In this document: positions 32,356 to 64,000 of the stretch, piece by piece
How positions within the stretch are numbered: position 1 is the first letter of the stretch
Layout: each line of letters opens with the position of its first letter
NCBI GenBank assembly: GCA_038496445.1
Contig: JALMLS010000397.1
Span: forward strand, 62,001-126,000
Reading direction: 5' to 3'
Length of the DNA stretch: 64,000 bases
Origin: Trichosphaerium sp. ATCC 40318
Taxonomy: Eukaryota; Protista; Tubulinea
Translations under genes and position numbers: made by a program
Notes under the pieces: generated by a model
The model's database searches: none
What the model saw: the letters and a program-made list of their open reading frames with translations, nothing else
What the model was told of the DNA's origin: nothing

Positions 32356-33431
32356 ATGCCTTCCGACGATAAATTAGTTAAAAAGATCAAATACGTAAAG
32401 AAACTCGCTGCTTGCTTCGAGGAGTACAACAAACTCCTTCTCGTAACTGCTGATAACGTTGGATCCAACCTTTTGCAAAAGATTCGTCAATCATGCCGTC
32501 CTTTGGCTCAAATCGTCATGGGCAAAAACGTACGAACTCTATAGCGCTTTCACTATATTTCTACATCTTTTCTGCACTGATTGGTTAACAAACCATTAAA
32601 ACAAGCCGTTTGTATTTCCCCTTACGTATTATCACTAACCGATGGCTTTAGACAATGATGAGACGTGCTATCCGCATCGCCGCTGAAAAGAACGACAAAT
32701 GGAACAACCTATTGCCTTTGATCGTTGATAACGTTGGTTTCGTATTCACCAAGAAAGATTTGGGTGATGTACGCGCAAAATTGCAAGAACTTAAAGTCGG
32801 TGCCCCAGCCCGTGTTGGTGCCGTTTCCCCAGTTACCGTTGTTATTCCAAAAGGACCAACTGGTTTGGAACCTACCAAAACATCTTTCCTACAAGCGCTC
32901 AACATTGCTTCAAAGATTAACAGAGGACAAATTGAAATCTTGACAGAAAAGGTTCTTATCGTAGAAGGAGAAAAAGTAGGTCCTTCTGAAGCTACCCTAT
33001 TGAAGATGTTAAACATTAACCCGTTCAAATACGGTTTGACTGTTACAAAAGTATACGATGATGGCGCTATGTACGACGCTGCTGTTTTGGATCTAACCGA
33101 CTCTATCCTCATCAGCAAGTTCGCTGCTGGTGTTTCCAACGTTGCTTCTATCTCATTGCAAATTGGTTTCCCAACACTCTGCGCTGTCCCACACGCAGTA
33201 TTGAACGCTTACAAGCGTTGTTTGGCTATTGCTCTCGCCACAGAAGTCACATTCCCTCAAGCCGAGCTCATGAAGGAAATGGCCGCAAACCCTGATGCTT
33301 TCAAGGCTGCTGCTGCCCCTGCTGGTGACACTGCTGCTGAGCCAGAGCCAGAAGAGGAAGAAGAAGAATCTGAAGCCGATCTCGGTGGCGGTGGTCTCTT
33401 CGGTGGATCTGATGATGATGACGACTGGTAG
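32356..33431 (+). CDS. RPLP0: 60S acidic ribosomal protein P0 (uL10)
   Basis: DNVGS..QKIR, MGKNTMMRRAI, GFVFTK, APARVGA, acidic C-terminus; single intron 32530-32651. Confidence 0.98.
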
Positions 33432-54969: not shown

Positions 54970-57544
54970 ATGAGCAACAACTCAACTGCTCTTCTTACAA
55001 TACTCTTACTCTCAGTATTTACTATTGTATCCAGCTGTACGTCAAGTGATATTTGTTACACATAGTGCTCCTCAAGAGTTCTAAACTTATACTTTTTTTA
55101 GCCGTTTTTCAGGCATCAATTGTTGGAGACCAAACATGTAGACGAAACTCTGATACAATGGGTGTACCGTCGAGCACTCTTACTTGGGGTGATGACGGAA
55201 ATAGATTCTCAGTAATTAAATTCACGATTTTTACCAACGAAGGTGGTGTAGTCCCAAGTGGATCTACAGTTGACTCCGCTGCTTTAACATTCATTGGTGA
55301 AAATGATGGAAGCTATCGGGGAAATGTTTATAGATCAGCTGTTGACTGGGATGAGGATACTGTCAACTACCAAAACTTTGGTGCTTCTGCCGGTGCCGAT
55401 GTTGAAGACTATGCCGGTGCTTCTGTTGCCGAAATACCTGACACAGAGAGGGACCAAGCCATTACCATTGATGTTACTAGTGCTGTTAGAGCTTGGAATA
55501 CTGGTGAAAACAATTTCGGATTTGTCATTGTACCAAGTGCGTTCTTATTTTTACCTTAACCACATGTCATTACTAACTGTTTTCTTTTTTTTTAGATGGT
55601 AGAGGTAGAAGTCGTTCTTCAGTTTACTCCTCAGAATCACAAAACAGGCCGGTACTTGAAATAACAACCCGCGAAGAGTACCAAGGATATAATGGCATTG
55701 GAAACAACGTACAAAATCCTACATATGGTTCTGTAAACGCTCCTTTATTGCGTCAAGTTATGGGTGCTAATGGTAATATCGTAATACCGCCATCATACCA
55801 AGATGGTCTTTCTTCTGTACGTTACAACACCCAGTTTTTTTCAGTATGTTTTGTTTAACTAACTTCCTCACTAGCCACGTGAATTGGATTCTAATGGTGA
55901 CCCATTACCTTCAGTAAGACTAGTAAGTAATCTTGTTGCCAACCACATTGAGCAAAGATCACGTGCAAGAAACCCAAGAAGGTACTTTCAAGACCTGAAA
56001 ACAAAAAAATCGTTTCTTTACCCCTTGCTGTTGCTCACTTTGGTTCCTTAGACATACTGATTTATTGACATACTTCGGGCAATTCTTGGATCACGATATT
56101 GATTTAACTCCAGAAGGTGGAGCAGAGTTCAATATTCAAGTACCTCCAAATGATCCAGTCTTCTCCCGTGAACTTCATTTTACAAGAGCTCGACAAATAG
56201 CTGGAACTCCCGCAACAGATCCTATAGAGCATCCTAACATAATCAGTGCTTTCATTGACGGTACTAATGTATATGGATCTGATCTCGACCGTGCTACTAA
56301 GTTGAGAACATTGTACGACAAACAATCTTTGAGGTATTTTTTTTTTACTAACTATCTGACCTAGGAGTAACGGGCTTATGAAAACTAGTAGTGGTGACTT
56401 TTTGCCTTTTAATCTTGATGAACTCAACCTCGGTATGGCCAACATTGGCTTTGTTCCTGATAATGAAACATTCGTTGCTGGAGATATCCGTGCCAATGAA
56501 AACGCTGTATTGATGTCTCTTCATACTTTATTTATAAGAGAACATAACAGGATTGCTGGAGAGCTTCAAACAGAAAATCCAACATGGTCAGATGAGAGAC
56601 TATACCAAGAAGCTAGAATGCGCGTTATTGCAACCCTTCAATCTATTACTATGTATGAATGGCTTCCAGAGGTTATTGGAAACATACCAAGCTACAGTGT
56701 ACGTACAGCTATCATTTTTCTTTCTTTACAAAGTGCTAACTCTGTTTCCAGGGATACAACGATAACGTTAATCCTGGTATCATGAGCGTTTTCTCAGGAG
56801 CAGCTTTCCGTTTCGGACACAGTTTAATCAGTACTATAATCCACAGAGTCGACCCAGACTTTCACTCTATTCCACAAGGACCTCTTCTTCTCAGAAACGC
56901 TTTTTTCAACCCTGTCTCTATTCAATACGGAATTGGTTCTATTCTCAGAGGTGTCATGATGCAACAACATGAATCTGTTGACGTACTCATCAGCGACGAC
57001 TTGAGAAACTTCTTGTTTCAAACTGTCGGCGGTGGAGGAGCAAGCAGACACGATTTATTTTCTTTGAATCTTCAAAGAGGCAGAGATTTGGGTCTACCAG
57101 ACTACAACACACTTCGTGCTGCATACGGATTTAACAGACTTACCGACTTCTCTGAAATTTCAAGCGACCCTGCTACAGTCAATGCGCTTGCTACTGCGTA
57201 TGTCAGTATTGACGATATTGATCCTTTCGTTGGTGGTCTTGCTGAAGGTACTGCTTACATTATAGTATGATATCACGTGTCTTATTTTATTTATAGATCA
57301 CCTTCAAGACAGTAAAATGGGTGAGTTGTTCACAGCTATTCTCCGAGATCAATTTGTCAGGTTGAGAGATGGTGACAGGTTCTGGTTTGAAAATGGACGC
57401 TTTTCAGATCAAGAAACACAAGCGTTGAGAAATACAAAAATGTTGGATGTTATCATTCGTAACACTGACACAAACCAAAGCACAGCCCAAGATTTCGTAT
57501 CTGCTTTCTCTCTCAGTGACGCAGCAAACGTACCTAATATGTAA
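54970..57544 (+). CDS. Secreted heme peroxidase (peroxidase-cyclooxygenase superfamily) with N-terminal DNRLRE/CBM96-like domain
   Basis: Signal peptide; [34 protein letters not shown]; then [52 protein letters not shown]. Confidence 0.92.
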
Positions 57545-57850
57545 GTGGACTCGAACCACACTGTAAATAAATATGTAGCTACATTTAAAGTCATGTTGTT
57601 GTTGTCAAGTTCTTAACTTTACCAATCTTAGATAAAGGTGACTATCCCTCCCCGACCAGTACATATTGTAGTGCATTAAATATAGGGAGAATGGTGGCGT
57701 GTAAAATACTTGTATCAATTTCCAAGAAGAGATTGTTTGTGCTACACTAGCTCGCTTCACTGATGCATCTTCCGAAAATTGTGGGAAACAATTATTATTT
57801 TAGAATGAGATTTGTGAAATAAATCACTGTGTACATTGACAACACAACAA

Positions 57851-58408
57851 ATGGCGTTATCACAAGAAAGACTGCAATACCTAATCAAAAATTACTACAA
57901 AACGGATATACGCTCAGAATGGGAAGCATACGAAAAAATATGCGCAAAAACGAAGCAAACACCTCTAGATTTATTAAAAGATCATAAACTATACACTCCA
58001 ACAAGTATTTTTACTATTTCAGCAATTACAACAAAAATAAGGTCTGAGCGGGAAAAAATAATACAAGGAGACGATTCATTAGCTGAGGAAGCGAAGAAAG
58101 AGCGTCTAGCAAAACGTCAGAAACGTGAAGAAGATTACGCCCAAAAACTAGGTAAAAAGTGCGAAAAATGCAATGGCACTAAGTTGTTGTATCTCTGCGG
58201 GCGTGGAAAGGATAATAATCACTGGACATTGCCTTCTGGTGCACAAGGAGAAGGATATATACCTTCTTTCCCTGGTTTGACAGATGGTTGTGGTGATGCT
58301 GTAGCTATAGATGTTTGCCTCGGTTGTGGTTGGATAGTAGGAATGAATTTGCAAGCTTTACGGGATTTTGTTGAAGAAGAAGAAACACAAGAGGAAAGCG
58401 GCATGTAA
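57851..58408 (+). CDS. Intronless hypothetical protein with a CxxC...CxxC zinc-ribbon-like domain
   Basis: CEKCNG...GEGYIP..GCGD...CLGCGWIVG; single ORF. Confidence 0.72.
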   Translation: MALSQERLQYLIKNYYKTDIRSEWEAYEKICAKTKQTPLDLLKDHKLYTPTSIFTISAITTKIRSEREKIIQGDDSLAEEAKKERLAKRQKREEDYAQKLGKKCEKCNGTKLLYLCGRGKDNNHWTLPSGAQGEGYIPSFPGLTDGCGDAVAIDVCLGCGWIVGMNLQALRDFVEEEETQEESGM

Positions 58409-58569
58409 TTCAGCAGTGAGTACTAATATTGCTTCCAAATAAATGACCCATTGTCTTGAAGTACAAGGCTCGTTCAAAATTGAGTTAAAAAACACGTGAT
58501 ATTCTATTGCGTGTCTTCTTGCAGCCATAGTTGTTAATTGTTGTATTGTTGTATTGTAGGTAGTTACAA

Positions 58570-58666
58570 ATGCCTTCATGATTCACCAGTGCATTAGGGT
58601 TTGATGTGAGATCCAACCAATAGCGGAAACCTCTGGAGCTCAAGATGAGCATATTCTGACTTTGCA
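58570..58666 (+). ncRNA. Candidate C/D box snoRNA
   Basis: ATGATTC, TTGATGT, terminal CTGA, TGC/GCA stem; AGATGAGCATAT can pair with 18S AUAUGCUUGUCU using two G-U pairs. Confidence 0.4.
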
Positions 58667-58882
58667 AAAAAAAAAAGAGTCCACGTGATATTTAGGAACA
58701 CATAAACAACCCTGACCTGTATTCCGTGCTTAAAACCAAACCAGTAAAAGAATTATTGCTGATTCTCTAGATTATAATGTGCTACTAAATTTGAATTCAA
58801 CTCGAATCTGATTGGATAGAATTACAAACTCGCTTAACTACAAATATTTTGTTTGTACAAGTATTTACAAGTAAATCTTAGC

Positions 58883-59744
58883 ATGTCAACAACAGATACA
58901 AGTTTTGAGATTCCCCCAAAAGGTGGTATCATAGGACGAAGTGTTCTTTCTACAAGTGACCAAGAACAATTGTTTAACTACATGCTTACAATGGCTGCAC
59001 CAGTACGTTGTTTGCTGGAAATATGATTGTATAATTCTTACCACTTTGTATTAACATATCTTTCTCAACAGAGATATATTGCTGATTTGAAATCAATGGC
59101 ATCAAGTGACAAATTCAAGGACAAGAATTTTCCTTTCCCAATGACATACTACAGGAATGCACTTACAGATGAATGTACAATGAAAGAAAGTACGTTTATA
59201 GTTTGTAATCTACTTTAATTAACACCCGTTTTAGAACCTACGAAGACCCTACAATGGATTAACGGCATCCTCGACGATATAAAAAGCTATGTTTCAGAGC
59301 ATGAAGATACCGCAAATCTCGAAGACATGTACAAAATAGGAAATCTAACGATTGACAGTTTCAGGGCTCAGCTGTACCCTAAAAAGGGCTTGTTGTGTAA
59401 ACATAAGGATCCCGGTAAGTACTTTTAAGAGTAGTACAATAGAGCTTACTCCATCCGAATTTAAATGGGCTGGAAGCCTCACACTTGGTGCACCTTGTGA
59501 CTTTATGTTTGATGGACACTTAATCAAACTATACTCAGGAGATATTGTATTCGGTAACTTAGGTAAAATCGAGCATGAGGTCGTAAAAGTATATCCAGAT
59601 GAGGTACCTTCATGGTGGCACTCTGTGGAAAATCTTGGATATGCTCGTTGTAATGTTCAATTTCGTCAGTATGATCAATACACTGGAAAAAAACAAACTG
59701 TAAAAGAGTACGATGATTATATAAATTCCTGGCAGCGCAATTGA
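58883..59744 (+). CDS. AlkB-like 2OG-Fe(II) dioxygenase
   Basis: AQLYP..G.L.KHKDP (HxD), SLTLGAPCDFMF, LYSGDIVFG, HEV, RCNVQFR. Confidence 0.8.
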
Positions 59745-59965
59745 TCCCTGATTGACATCTTCCTTACTTTATTAACCAAGATGTATTTAATCTCACAGTG
59801 ACAACCATGTATAAGCGCATAAAACAACCGATCGAACATAAAAAAGACGCAATGAGAAACATGTTTAACTTACTAGTTTTATTACTTCGCAACTCAAAGA
59901 AAAAAGGCAATTGTTGTAAAAGTGTAGTTTATTGTTATTTTAAAGGATATCAGACAAGTACGTGC

Positions 59966-60523
59966 TTATGAGTCAATTTGGATGACTGCAGTATGGGTGC
60001 CTTTTGTGAAATCGTTGTAGTTAGGCTTGTCTCCTTGATTCAAGGCACCATACTTGGTCCAGTTATCCATTACAAGAGCCATTGAATAAGCGGAGCGAGT
60101 ATCGCAAATCAACTCTTCCCTGTCTTTGTTCTTCTTGAACACCTTATTCATAAACTTGGACATCTTTGATACTTCGGTCGATTTAATACGGTCGCGTCCA
60201 GTTACAGCAGATGTTTCAAGTAACTGCTTAACAAGCTCAAGGAATTTTCTTATCTGAGCGATAATAAGAGTCAAGTCTTTGCAAAAGACCTCTGACTTTT
60301 TGAGGCATTTGTATGCCTCTCCTGTTTGCAACTCGGCGTGACATTCAGTTAGAAACTCGCTGATTAAGTTTGCTTTAGCTACTGACTTTGCAAGAGATTG
60401 TCTGTCATCTTCGTCCAGTGCACCTTTTTTTGATTCGGTGGCAGTGTTATAGATGTCAAGGCCTAGGGCGCCTGCTCCTACGAGTGCTGTGAGTACTGCT
60501 GCTGCTGCTACTGCTGATGCCAT
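59966..60523 (-). CDS. Intronless helical hypothetical protein with hydrophobic N-terminal helix
   Basis: 185-aa ORF with coding-like composition, flanked by AT-rich DNA. Confidence 0.7.
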   Translation of the reverse strand: MASAVAAAAVLTALVGAGALGLDIYNTATESKKGALDEDDRQSLAKSVAKANLISEFLTECHAELQTGEAYKCLKKSEVFCKDLTLIIAQIRKFLELVKQLLETSAVTGRDRIKSTEVSKMSKFMNKVFKKNKDREELICDTRSAYSMALVMDNWTKYGALNQGDKPNYNDFTKGTHTAVIQIDS

Positions 60524-61673
60524 GTTGTTGATGGGGACGAAGTTGTATTATTTTGTTTTCTTGTACCTGTACTTAACACGCAAACTAAACTACAAAACCA
60601 CTTCTCAAAAGTTAGGCCAAAACTTTTTTTTGGAGTATATGCCATACTTTTATTATAGCCTAGTGTTATAGCATAGCTGGCCAACTGTTGCGTATTTTAG
60701 TTGTTGATGTAGTTCTTTATTAACTTCAGTTTTTTTGAAGTTCACAAATAAAAAATCGGAAAAAACCAACCTTTCCTGCCAGTGTATGTATTAGCGATAA
60801 TTTGAAAAACTGCTGTATTACGCATGAAGCATCAACCTGTAGTTTTGCCGAAAGAAGATTTGGCCTAATTTTTCTTTGCAAACTAACAAACATCTGTACT
60901 GAACTATCGCAAGTGAAGATTTGTTCTTGACTTGATCAATTACACATTGCAATACTAGTTTTGTATGTGTATTGTTGCGCTATCTGAAATCATCATACTA
61001 TGCTGTACGTTTCTTAAAATCCAAATACATGCACAAACTTAGGCTACTCTAGACAATTCTATTATGAGTTTTTCTTTTTCATTGTCGATCATCGTTCAAT
61101 CTTGCTGGGAACGAAACATAGAAACACACCTGGATATTTTGCTTTCATGATGTTAGATACTTTCTTCACTAGCCACAGCTTGAACCATTTAACCTTAACT
61201 TTACTGTAAAAGTTATAATAATCACGTGTTTTAATAAAACGTTTGATATCATGTGCAACAAAAGTGATTCCAAATAATTGCACGTATGACAATTAGTCTA
61301 GTTTCATTTTTCATGGCGTGTCACGCCATGTGCGTAAAGAATTATGACACGTCGAGCTATAAATTTTCGTAACAAATTCTACTACTAAGAGTACATTCTG
61401 ACGAATTAGCAGAGAAACAAAAAACCGGTATATCAAGAATCTAGTGAAATCCACAAATTTTTTTTTTGTAACTTTCTAATGGCAATTCAACGCTTATTGT
61501 CCGATACTTATTAAAAACCTATTATACACTCATTTTAATAACGTTGGTTGTGATTTTAAGGCTTTTTAAATTAATTTAGAGTATATTTGTTTGACACGAA
61601 ACGATAATAAGTTGGTAGCGCTCTTTTACCATTTTAAGAGTAATTTGTAGCGCTTTTGAAAGCTATTTGGTGC

Positions 61674-62186
61674 CTACTTGCCACCCATTTGTTCGCGCTG
61701 TTTTTTGTCCTCAGTTTCGGAGATACCATAGCGTGTGCTGTTCGCTGTGTAGTTCTAAAACAGGAGTTTAGTTAAAATGTCGCTTGTTGCGTCAATTTGT
61801 ATTATAAATACTAAATTAGCGGCTACTGTAGTAACATACTGCGACTCTGGCTTGGTTGTCTTGATCAATTGTTTTTTGTCTCAATTGAGAAATACTGAAG
61901 CTCTCTTGTCTACCAGAACCTAAACAGTGGTGTCAAGACGACTTTTCTTGTGATCTTTTTTACTAATTTGTAATTGCTTTACCTTCTACACCTTTAGATC
62001 CCCACCGTTGTTCTTCCTACGCTCATAATTAGCAAAATACGAATAAATATAACGCTACTATACCTCAGTAACATCGTTTATGAAGTCTGCGTCAGTTTCC
62101 CAATCATCGTCGTCATCCATACCAGGATCAGGTAGTTTATTAGGATCATGGGCACCCAAGTCTTCTGGTCTACCGTAAACACTCAT
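61674..62186 (-). CDS. Cortactin/HS1 N-terminal acidic domain-only protein (~105 aa)
   Basis: Four exons give [35 protein letters not shown]..ISQLR, then stop after QMGGK. Confidence 0.88.
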
Positions 62187-62491
62187 TGTAACGGGTTTTA
62201 TGTAGTTTAAAAATAGGCCAGGAAATATAAGGTAAGACAAAGTCAAACAACCCAAAAATTGAAATAAGTGATTGCCTATGAGTGCCAATCAAACTAAGTA
62301 AGGAAGAGCTATGGCTGTTTCGATAGTGTCTTGCATTTTCATGCAAATCTTGGTGTATTTCTCAGTACTATAGAACTGCATGAAGCTAAGTTTTGTAACA
62401 TTATTTAAGCACGTGTTTTAGACTACTTTGAATACGTCGCTATTCTTTTTGGATGTAGGCTTAACTCTTACACTTAAAATACCTTTAATCA

Positions 62492-64000
62492 ATGCGGATT
62501 GTCTCAATACTTGTAGTACTTTGCGTGGTGGTACTAGCGCAAGTATCTACAATACGTACAAGACTACAATTTGAGGATAACTTTTTGAATTCTGTCCCGA
62601 GTTCTCCCGGCGCTTCGTTGGATGTACAGCCAAGTACTAGCGCGGATAATGTTACTTTCATCGATGGTCTCTTTGGAAAAGCGTTGCGGTTCTCTACACA
62701 GCGTTCTGGATCGCTATTAACGCTACGTACGCTACTTCAATGATTTTTTCAGTCACGTGTACAAAGATTCTATTAACACGTTTTCAGCTGGCAGTTTTAC
62801 GCCATTCACTGCAGTACCTGCAACTTTTTCGTTGTGGATAAGGCAGTATAGATACATGCTATTTTCTCGCTCAATTTTTACATTTTCTGGTAGTGGGTTT
62901 GGCATAGAGATAGATATTGGTACTCTAATCTTTTTTTTTTTTCGCTTGGATTTTTTTTTCTGATAGTCGTTTTTGTTATTGTTTAGGTGGCCTTACATGC
63001 GGTTCTCGGTGCATATCAGTTGAAGCTAGTTCTAGTGGAGAATCAGGTACACTTCAAAGAGCTTATTTAAGCGTCGTTTTAAACGATTGTTGTCTTTCAG
63101 ACGATGAAACTGGTCACGACGTATTTAATTCGAATTCTGAATGGGTATTGTTGACAATAGAGATTACAGGTCCTTCTGATGCACATGTTGTAAGCGTAAA
63201 CTGTGTGGCTACGCAGTAGCCAGTAGTAGCGAGCTATTGACTGACGAATCTTTTCTTTAGGTAAAAGTATACAGGAACAATATCCTTCTCGAAGTGCTTG
63301 ACGCTGGCGGACCAGCTCTTTCTTCAGTGTTATCAACAACACAACTATTGATTGGTGGATCTGGTGTAGATATAGATGAGTTTCGATGGTACAGTACCAT
63401 TTTTTCAAATTCAGAAAGGCACGTGCTCAGTAATGCCGCTACTTTCTTATAAGCCTCACTCAGATGTTCACAAGTCATGTGTGGAGTATTTAATGAAAAC
63501 ACTGGAGCTTGTTCATCCCCAGATTGCTCCTCATCTATTGACGGTAATCAATCGGAAAGTGGTAGCAATTTAAGCATTGTAGTCATAGGTAAACATATTA
63601 CAGTTTGTCTATTTGAAACATGATACTAAACAAACAATAGTGCTATCTGTGGTTGTATTATTGTTGCTCATTATTATCATTGCAATAGCTTCAGTATTCA
63701 TTTACAGATGCGTTGGTAGACGTAAACTAAAAACACAACATGCTACTGTTCTTAATACCATAGCAAATAGTGAAAGCGTTGGTGTGACTCCTATAGAAAC
63801 ACGTGATGCTTCACGTACGCTTTTTTTTTTCATAACACGCATTTTTCTTCATTTCCTTTTTCGTTTTATGGTCTCCTTCGTTCTTGCGGTAGCTTTGAAC
63901 GTAAACTTCATAGTAATCTATTCACATGTTATTCAGAGTCTGCTACCCGATCACAAAACCCCAGTAGGCTTACTGTGAAGCGAGGTATTGCTACAAGTAT
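62492..64000 (+). CDS. LamG/concanavalin-like domain type I membrane protein (3'-partial)
   Basis: Signal peptide, DGLFGKALRF, TFSLWIR, LLIGG..DIDEFRWY, Cys-rich juxtamembrane region, TM and RRKLK; runs off the window. Confidence 0.75.

Follow-up and report, generated by a model that had tools for sequence, protein, structure and literature searches.

In cortactin and HS1, proteins of ~480–550 residues found in animals and other Holozoa, an N-terminal head (NtA) is followed by 3.5–6.5 repeats, a central helical and proline-rich region, and an SH3 domain. The head contains an inverted acidic domain, formed by D20–V29, that binds the Arp3 pocket used by the acidic tails of NPFs; the fragment Cort1-76 has a KD of 2–5 μM (PMC10613254). 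Cort1-76 shows no binding to F-actin but acts in synergy with NPFs, and the synergy is greatest with dimeric ones (PMC10613254). At the branch junction, cortactin residues 21–79 touch ArpC2 and each of the four subdomains of Arp3: a basic pocket receives the DWE motif, residues 24–54 meander across the surface, and the helix I55–T76 lies in the cleft of Arp3 subdomains 1 and 3, where it stabilises the activated W-loop (PMC11102864). Residue 80, which lies on the first daughter subunit, opens repeat 1, and by itself the NtA makes branches partly resistant to debranching (PMC11102864). According to two comparative surveys, cortactin arose in Holozoa (PMC3748353, PMC4824007).

Here, we describe a gene from the amoeba Trichosphaerium sp. 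ATCC 40318 whose product corresponds to this head and to no other cortactin part, as judged by alignment. The gene lies near one end of a 64,000-nucleotide stretch of contig JALMLS010000397.1, which we call the window. A preliminary description of the window had noticed a product of ~105 residues resembling the cortactin/HS1 N-terminus and had proposed that it acts by itself.

The locus is a complete, expressed gene

Transcript evidence came from contigs of four public runs in three studies, aligned over positions 56700–62500. The type of these runs was guessed by software, without an RNA record; we take the contigs as RNA because the assembly has just the locus with its introns and an allelic copy, and none of their intron-less joins. 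Each run yielded one contig of ~390–430 nt lacking exactly three introns, and all three joints read CT..AC on the plus strand. The resulting four-exon gene lies on the minus strand and encodes 105 residues (Table 1). Its start and stop codons fall precisely at the ends of the span first proposed for it (61674–62186), and the spliced length bears out the earlier estimate.

Table 1. Positions in the window of the NtA-only gene, its parts, and other features discussed in the text.
Feature	Position	Strand	Evidence or remark
5′ UTR	62187..62193	-	contig starts 62190, 62192, 62193
Coding span, four exons	61674..62186	-	ATG A at 62186; TAG at 61676–61674
Exon 1 CDS, M1–E41 (MSVYGR N-terminus and acidic DDW region)	62064..62186	-	HMM E=3.3e-10
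D27–I36 within exon 1, counterpart by alignment of the cortactin D20–V29 inverted acidic domain	62079..62108	-	PDB match and alignment; residue roles from PMC10613254, PMC11102864
W29 codon (exon 1)	62102–62100	-	
Intron 1, 47 nt, GT..AG	62017..62063	-	joint 62015>62063 (cut +1), 4 runs
Exon 2, 34 nt (11 residues and first base of G53)	61983..62016	-	HMM E=0.019
Intron 2, 63 nt, GT..AG	61920..61982	-	joint 61917>61981 (cut +2), 4 runs
Exon 3, G53–A79 (GSGR and initial stretch of predicted amphipathic helix)	61840..61919	-	HMM E=0.079
Predicted helix onset, I62	61893–61891	-	placed by alignment to the homologue's AlphaFold2 helix
Intron 3, 85 nt, GT..AG	61755..61839	-	joint 61754>61840, 4 runs
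Exon 4 CDS, N80–K105 and TAG (helix end and Y88–G89)	61674..61754	-	pairwise E=0.002 vs Pyxidicula homologue
Y88–G89, near-invariant	61730–61725	-	counterpart by alignment of first residues of cortactin repeat 1
3′ UTR	61584..61673	-	contig ends 61626, 61611, 61596, 61584
Single-exon 185-aa ORF	59966..60523	-	1.15 kb downstream
Neighbouring multi-exon gene	62492..64000	+	signal-peptide-like N-terminus
Transmembrane-like exon of that neighbour	~63640–63700	+	
Large exon, ribosomal protein P0 (uL10)	32655..33428	+	RL10P_insert and 60S acidic tail

The contigs run colinearly across the TAG and end 50–90 nt past it; the one ending at 61596 runs into Illumina adapter. No joint leaving exon 4 was seen in the contigs of the four runs, despite a GT that overlaps the TAG, and these RNA-derived contigs rule out that GT as an alternative donor. 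Downstream, positions 61673–60524 hold no further exon of the gene. Onward splicing to repeat or SH3 exons, the outcome that would have undone the idea of a stand-alone product, is thus not seen in these contigs, and the DNA after the gene is non-coding with respect to it, as had been supposed. We conclude that the locus is a complete, expressed gene in its own right.

A genome search found a single locus and an allelic copy on contig C458. C458 is 100% identical to the window over 60100–62700, and from 62702 it differs by ~3% (37 events in 1.1 kb). It is most likely the other allele, and has the look of a haplotig in which allelic divergence switches abruptly. The absence of allelic differences in the NtA gene is uninformative on selection, because C37 and C458 are identical across the whole of 60100–62700.

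In the two runs of 2024 (X2 and X3), the exact transcript is accompanied by contigs of 336–340 nt whose match to the window is limited to ~34 nt at 61850–61883 and around 62115, with 5 mismatches, beyond which they diverge. In frame, the loose end at 62115 translates as …DPTNPDFNADDDDW…. These diverged contigs point to a second NtA-type transcript, which could stem from an unassembled paralogue or from a different organism in the sample; our genome search did not find a second NtA locus for it.

The product is a homologue of the cortactin NtA

Searched alone against the PDB with phmmer, exon 1 has cortactin as its best match (8tah_H, E=0.004), through DDWETDxDFxNDVxE. A first profile, made from exons 1 and 2 together with a single short database sequence, was searched against 1.84 billion representatives and returned 270 proteins at E≤1e-3. 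All are of cortactin/HS1 type over the matched segment, and they comprise cortactin/HS1 together with a distinct family of short proteins that begin with MSVY. An HMM (A3) was then made from 19 family members without any window sequence and run against all six-frame fragments of the window, 3734 in number. Its top three matches are exons 1, 2 and 3, ranked in that order, at consecutive model coordinates and on one strand. Exon 4 was not significant against this HMM; it is colinear with the C-terminus of the homologue from Pyxidicula described below. Exon 3 also matches vertebrate cortactin residues 46–64. With these results, the likeness to the cortactin/HS1 N-terminus that had been noticed by eye holds up. 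Pfam, which has no NtA model, gave no matches to any of the four exons, and a word search for short relatives of exon 1 gave the first exon of an animal cortactin as its sole candidate.

Conservation is uneven along the protein. Within D27–K49, the window protein equals the A3 consensus at 19 of 23 positions and the animal cortactin exon at all 23, which we read from the alignments as extreme conservation of the presumed Arp3 interface. The helix region and the C-terminal tail are weakly conserved, as the E-value of exon 3 (0.079) and the lack of significance of exon 4 indicate.

The animal exon comes from an ENA metagenome contig (k141_94870, L010) with an animal-type cortactin gene, the first exon of which carries the 23-residue stretch identical to that of the amoeba protein. 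At 5 of the 23 positions, human cortactin departs from both.

In common with cortactin and HS1, the window protein has the pattern DDW(E/D)TD.DF.ND..E..QRWG.K, the GSG(R/H) segment, a 22-residue helix predicted to begin 33 residues after the tryptophan, and the YG that opens repeat 1. It differs in its first six residues (MSVYGR rather than the MWKA type), in its length of 105 residues, and in lacking the 37-residue repeats, the central helical/proline-rich region and the SH3 domain; it also comes from outside Holozoa. Relative to Cort1-76 and the NtA seen in PDB 8TAH and 8P94, it covers the same segment and adds a short tail, YG and ~16 residues; the cortactin fragment is a laboratory truncation, whereas the amoeba protein is a natural and conserved product. 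The earlier view that the protein stops before any repeat, helical or SH3 region therefore needs qualifying: it has neither a 37-residue repeat nor an SH3 domain, but it keeps the NtA helix and the YG with which repeat 1 begins.

No C-terminal SH3 domain was found in the 105-residue product, the transcript of which ends soon after the TAG without an onward joint. Genome-wide, an HS1 repeat was not found with PF02218, with a back-translated GGKFGV pattern or with an authentic animal repeat exon as query, although these searches have limited sensitivity for repeats split between exons and "not found" here falls short of proof of absence. The GGKFGV DNA pattern occurs in the genome at the frequency of controls, and its matches are unrelated. 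Taken together, the alignments indicate that the 105-residue protein is a full-length homologue of the cortactin/HS1 NtA.

A family of NtA-only proteins in Amoebozoa

The profile search, which follows a suggestion of the preliminary description, recovered ~14 MSVY-type proteins of 70–108 residues. Most have 89–108 residues, two shorter entries look truncated, and the one from Thecamonas is longer. The short proteins have a common layout, with an MSVY(G/E)R start, the acidic DDW, a helix segment, an end a few residues past (L/R)YG, and no HS1 repeats. The window protein shares it, having 105 residues, a single NtA and an end soon after YG, and its four exons tile the family alignment (A2) end to end without overlap.

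Four members carry amoebozoan names, all from EukProt transcriptomes: Pyxidicula operculata (P0057, 105 residues), Planopodium desertum (101 residues), Ceratiomyxa fruticulosa (99 residues) and Cochliopodium minus (100 residues). They span Tubulinea, Discosea and Evosea, and Pfam finds nothing in any of the four. With Thecamonas, they give colinear homologues in five named species outside the opisthokonts. The Pyxidicula homologue is ~36% identical to the window protein and of the same length; it is the nearest colinear relative, and its source is a tubulinean, in keeping with the assignment of the window to Trichosphaerium though no independent proof of it. All ten positions that are invariant or nearly invariant in A3 are retained in the window protein (W29, N37, E41, R45, G47, D27, T31, D34, Y88, G89), and they have the same residue numbers in the Pyxidicula protein, as does Y81. 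A JGI metagenome contig from another organism (L031) carries an intronless ORF for a 100-residue homologue, with a convergent gene for 483 residues 200 nt further on.

By these comparisons, the window gene is a member of a conserved family of NtA-only proteins of roughly 90–105 residues in Amoebozoa. We found no description of MSVY-type NtA-only mini-proteins in the literature searched.

Arp3 and a proposed mechanism

As a stand-in for the window protein, we used the colinear Pyxidicula homologue for AlphaFold2, which predicts one confident helix at 62–83 (pLDDT ~93). Its 22 residues equal the length of the cortactin helix. In the window protein, W29 to I62 is a spacing of 33 residues, the same as W22 to I55 in cortactin, and the end of the protein comes ~17 residues past the YG that matches cortactin Y84–G85.

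The genome holds an intact Arp3 gene of ~8–9 short exons (contig C58, 176500–180500), which we located through a VWFGGS DNA pattern. One of its exons is identical to mammalian Arp3 residues 111–178 at 62 of 68 positions (E=5e-35), a segment that takes in the hinge helix and the "cortactin loop" contacting the cortactin helix. Thirteen loci fetched by their Pfam Actin matches were rejected as Arp3 and are other divergent actin-like genes. The actin superfamily is very large in this genome, with 136 exon-level Pfam Actin matches at dozens of loci, and many of the genes are divergent and actin-like, being neither conventional actin nor Arp2/3 (C263/C243, C473, C128, C56, C130).

For prediction of the complex, we paired the Pyxidicula homologue and an Arp3 of metagenome origin, which shares 93% identity with that of the genome over the 68-residue query exon. 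This stand-in pair scored 0.48, and none of three controls rose above 0.00; contact agreement between runs was at least 57% and partner pLDDT at least 47. In calibration, 51 of 78 solved complexes passed the mark, as did 2 of 108 mismatched pairs; passes at 0.60 or under, the range of our pair, came from only 5 of the 78 solved complexes and from every one of the 4 passing mismatches (of 180). Because a complex of this kind has already been solved, the pass may do no more than repeat that likeness. Homology to the solved cortactin NtA–Arp3 interface suggests that the window protein may bind Arp3, with weak support from the prediction.

We propose that the acidic DDW stretch, D27–I36, would insert into the basic Arp3 pocket that also takes WASP-family acidic tails. 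The next 25 residues would run across the Arp3 surface, the helix would occupy the cleft that separates Arp3 subdomains 1 and 3, and the terminal YG stub could touch the daughter filament's first subunit. The expected net effect is that activated Arp3 is favoured, the CA segment of the activator is displaced or NPF release is helped, and branches are modestly protected. Bridging from branch to F-actin would be impossible for this protein because it has no 37-residue repeats. We thus regard the window protein as probably an NtA-like Arp3 binder that aids NPF release and stabilises the activated complex without bridging to F-actin, and put the probability of this reading at about 0.7. The net effect on nucleation could differ from that of cortactin, because the N-terminal 17 residues of cortactin matter for co-activation and are replaced here (MSVY rather than MWKA).

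The acidic tails of Arpin and WASP-family NPFs resemble the window protein in having an acidic stretch with one tryptophan for the same Arp3 pocket. Their motif, however, is C-terminal and of opposite polarity, is not homologous to NtA, and prefers inactive Arp3 (PMC10613254, PMC11102864). The layout typical of them, a C-terminal acidic-Trp motif, preceded in NPFs by a C helix, was not found in the window protein.

If our reading is correct, natural NtA-only proteins would allow the structural models of 2023–2024, in which the NtA by itself both stabilises activated Arp3 and hastens the release of NPFs, to be tested. The window protein would also be a probable, so far unstudied candidate regulator of Arp2/3 in amoeboid cells, the classic models of Arp2/3-driven motility and phagocytosis.

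Evolutionary origin of the NtA

The closest proteins outside Amoebozoa have other architectures. An apusomonad protein, Thecamonas trahens XP_013756644.1 (P0135, 184 residues, automatically named "cortactin isoform F"), starts with an MSVY-type head and a degenerate YGG stub; a linker rich in proline then leads to an SH3 domain (Pfam SH3_9, E=1.6e-21). With the window protein it shares the MSVY-type N-terminus, the acidic DDW and the helix, and its stub reads RGYGG; its SH3 domain is missing from the window gene. Zoosporic fungi have proteins of 103–130 residues whose head has an opisthokont-type N-terminus: Blastocladiella KAI9176140.1 (recorded as "Hematopoietic lineage cell-specific protein"), Paraphysoderma KAI9143513.1, Blyttiomyces KAJ3313806.1 and Olpidium KAG5458637.1. 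Like the window protein, these are short, have the acidic DDW and helix, and lack SH3. They differ in the …WKA… N-terminus and, in Blastocladiella and Paraphysoderma, in a half HS1 repeat that scores above the Pfam threshold (36 and 33 bits, respectively).

On this evidence, the NtA head is found across Amorphea, and repeats and SH3 have a narrower range; the distribution shows an origin of the NtA module well before animals and their closest single-celled relatives. The Holozoa date of the surveys probably comes from reliance on HS1 repeats and SH3, and from Pfam being without an NtA model. A 2006 EST table gives a cortactin match from Blastocladiella without comment; in our searches, we found no literature linking cortactin with apusomonads, Amorphea, Obazoa or Blastocladiomycota. 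Because MSVY is common to Amoebozoa and the apusomonad, it is probably the older N-terminus, and MWKA an opisthokont change.

Two histories could account for these architectures. In one, the ancestor had the head only, the obazoan stem gained SH3, which zoosporic fungi then lost, and the repeats grew from the YGG stub. In the other, the ancestor may have had head and SH3, and SH3 was lost in Amoebozoa and fungi; since Thecamonas combines NtA and SH3, a loss in Amoebozoa is possible instead of primary absence. Simple parsimony slightly favours the head-only ancestor, in a comparison where most profile matches carry no taxon label.

It is tempting to speculate that the NtA is an ancient, Amorphea-wide and self-sufficient Arp3 regulator, a "proto-cortactin" of ~100 residues, to which SH3 was added first (already in apusomonads), after which the F-actin-binding repeat was multiplied from the terminal YGG stub, while Amoebozoa kept the original stand-alone form. 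We hold this fuller history tentatively, at slightly short of even odds. If it is true, the proto-cortactin form is a natural system for NtA action without F-actin bridging, and the history is a stepwise, testable route for the assembly of a multi-domain actin regulator.

Alternative explanations

An Arp3 binder without repeats could also damp branching. As an Arpin-like competitive inhibitor, the window protein would fill the acidic-tail pocket of Arp3 and keep WASP/SCAR from delivering actin; one Arp3 site serves the NtA, Arpin and the acidic domains of NPFs, the protein has no F-actin-binding repeats, and high Cort1-76 lowers polymerisation with monomeric WCA (PMC10613254). We think this unlikely, given the synergy of Cort1-76 with NPFs, which is strongest for dimeric ones (PMC10613254), and given that the NtA by itself protects branches and, in contrast to CA or Arpin, has a preference for activated Arp3 (PMC11102864). 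The helix that confers this preference is retained in the window protein at the same spacing. A good deal less probable is that the protein is a reduced remnant of a longer one, with NtA and SH3 or NtA and repeats, that no longer acts on Arp2/3 and either serves another role or is drifting. Domain loss is conceivable from Thecamonas (NtA and SH3) and from the fungi (NtA and half a repeat), and the C-terminal tail is poorly conserved. Such a remnant would hardly be expected to keep D27–K49 at 19/23 of the A3 consensus and 23/23 of the animal cortactin exon, as well as 10/10 of the invariant or nearly invariant positions, in a gene that is expressed in three studies and belongs to a family maintained in three major amoebozoan clades.

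The two remaining explanations concern the gene rather than its action, and we give both very little weight. The window gene might be the 5′ part of a full-length cortactin gene, with repeat and SH3 exons further downstream: the GT at 61677–61676 (AA|GTAGGC) could be a donor, and the terminal GGK resembles the GYGGK that starts repeat 1. But four of four contigs cross the TAG unspliced and end within 50–90 nt, one of them with adapter; searches of the genome by Pfam model, DNA pattern or authentic repeat exon turned up no HS1 repeat; and the homologues of other species end in the same place. Horizontal transfer from an animal is unlikely, and a recent transfer, or contamination with animal DNA, is hardly credible. 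What speaks for it is a protein (P0001) from a metagenome contig with an MWKA-type cortactin and HS1 repeats, identical to the window protein over the 23 residues of DDWETD…RWGSK. Against this, the N-terminus is of the amoebozoan and apusomonad MSVY type and not MWKA. Identity to animal proteins is 30–38%, compared with 34–36% to named Amoebozoa and up to 39% to unnamed MSVY-type proteins. The gene also has three introns at positions unlike those of the animal contig, and it lies in a contig of >126 kb, with an allelic copy.

Other features of the window

The source organism has no close relative in the collection searched, since the best database relatives of the ribosomal protein P0 exon are only 50–64% identical; the few labelled ones are from Flamella and a diatom-labelled MMETSP entry. 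On the minus strand downstream of the NtA gene, the 185-residue ORF has an Ala-rich hydrophobic N-terminus. It gave no Pfam family above threshold and no exact-sequence database record, and no transcript contig crosses it in the runs examined, only 31-mers on its CAG/GCA repeat. On the other side of the NtA gene, the plus-strand neighbour is transcribed divergently and begins with the signal-peptide-like MRIVSILVVLCVVVLA…, followed later by the transmembrane-like exon. The point at which C458 begins to diverge from the window falls inside this neighbour.
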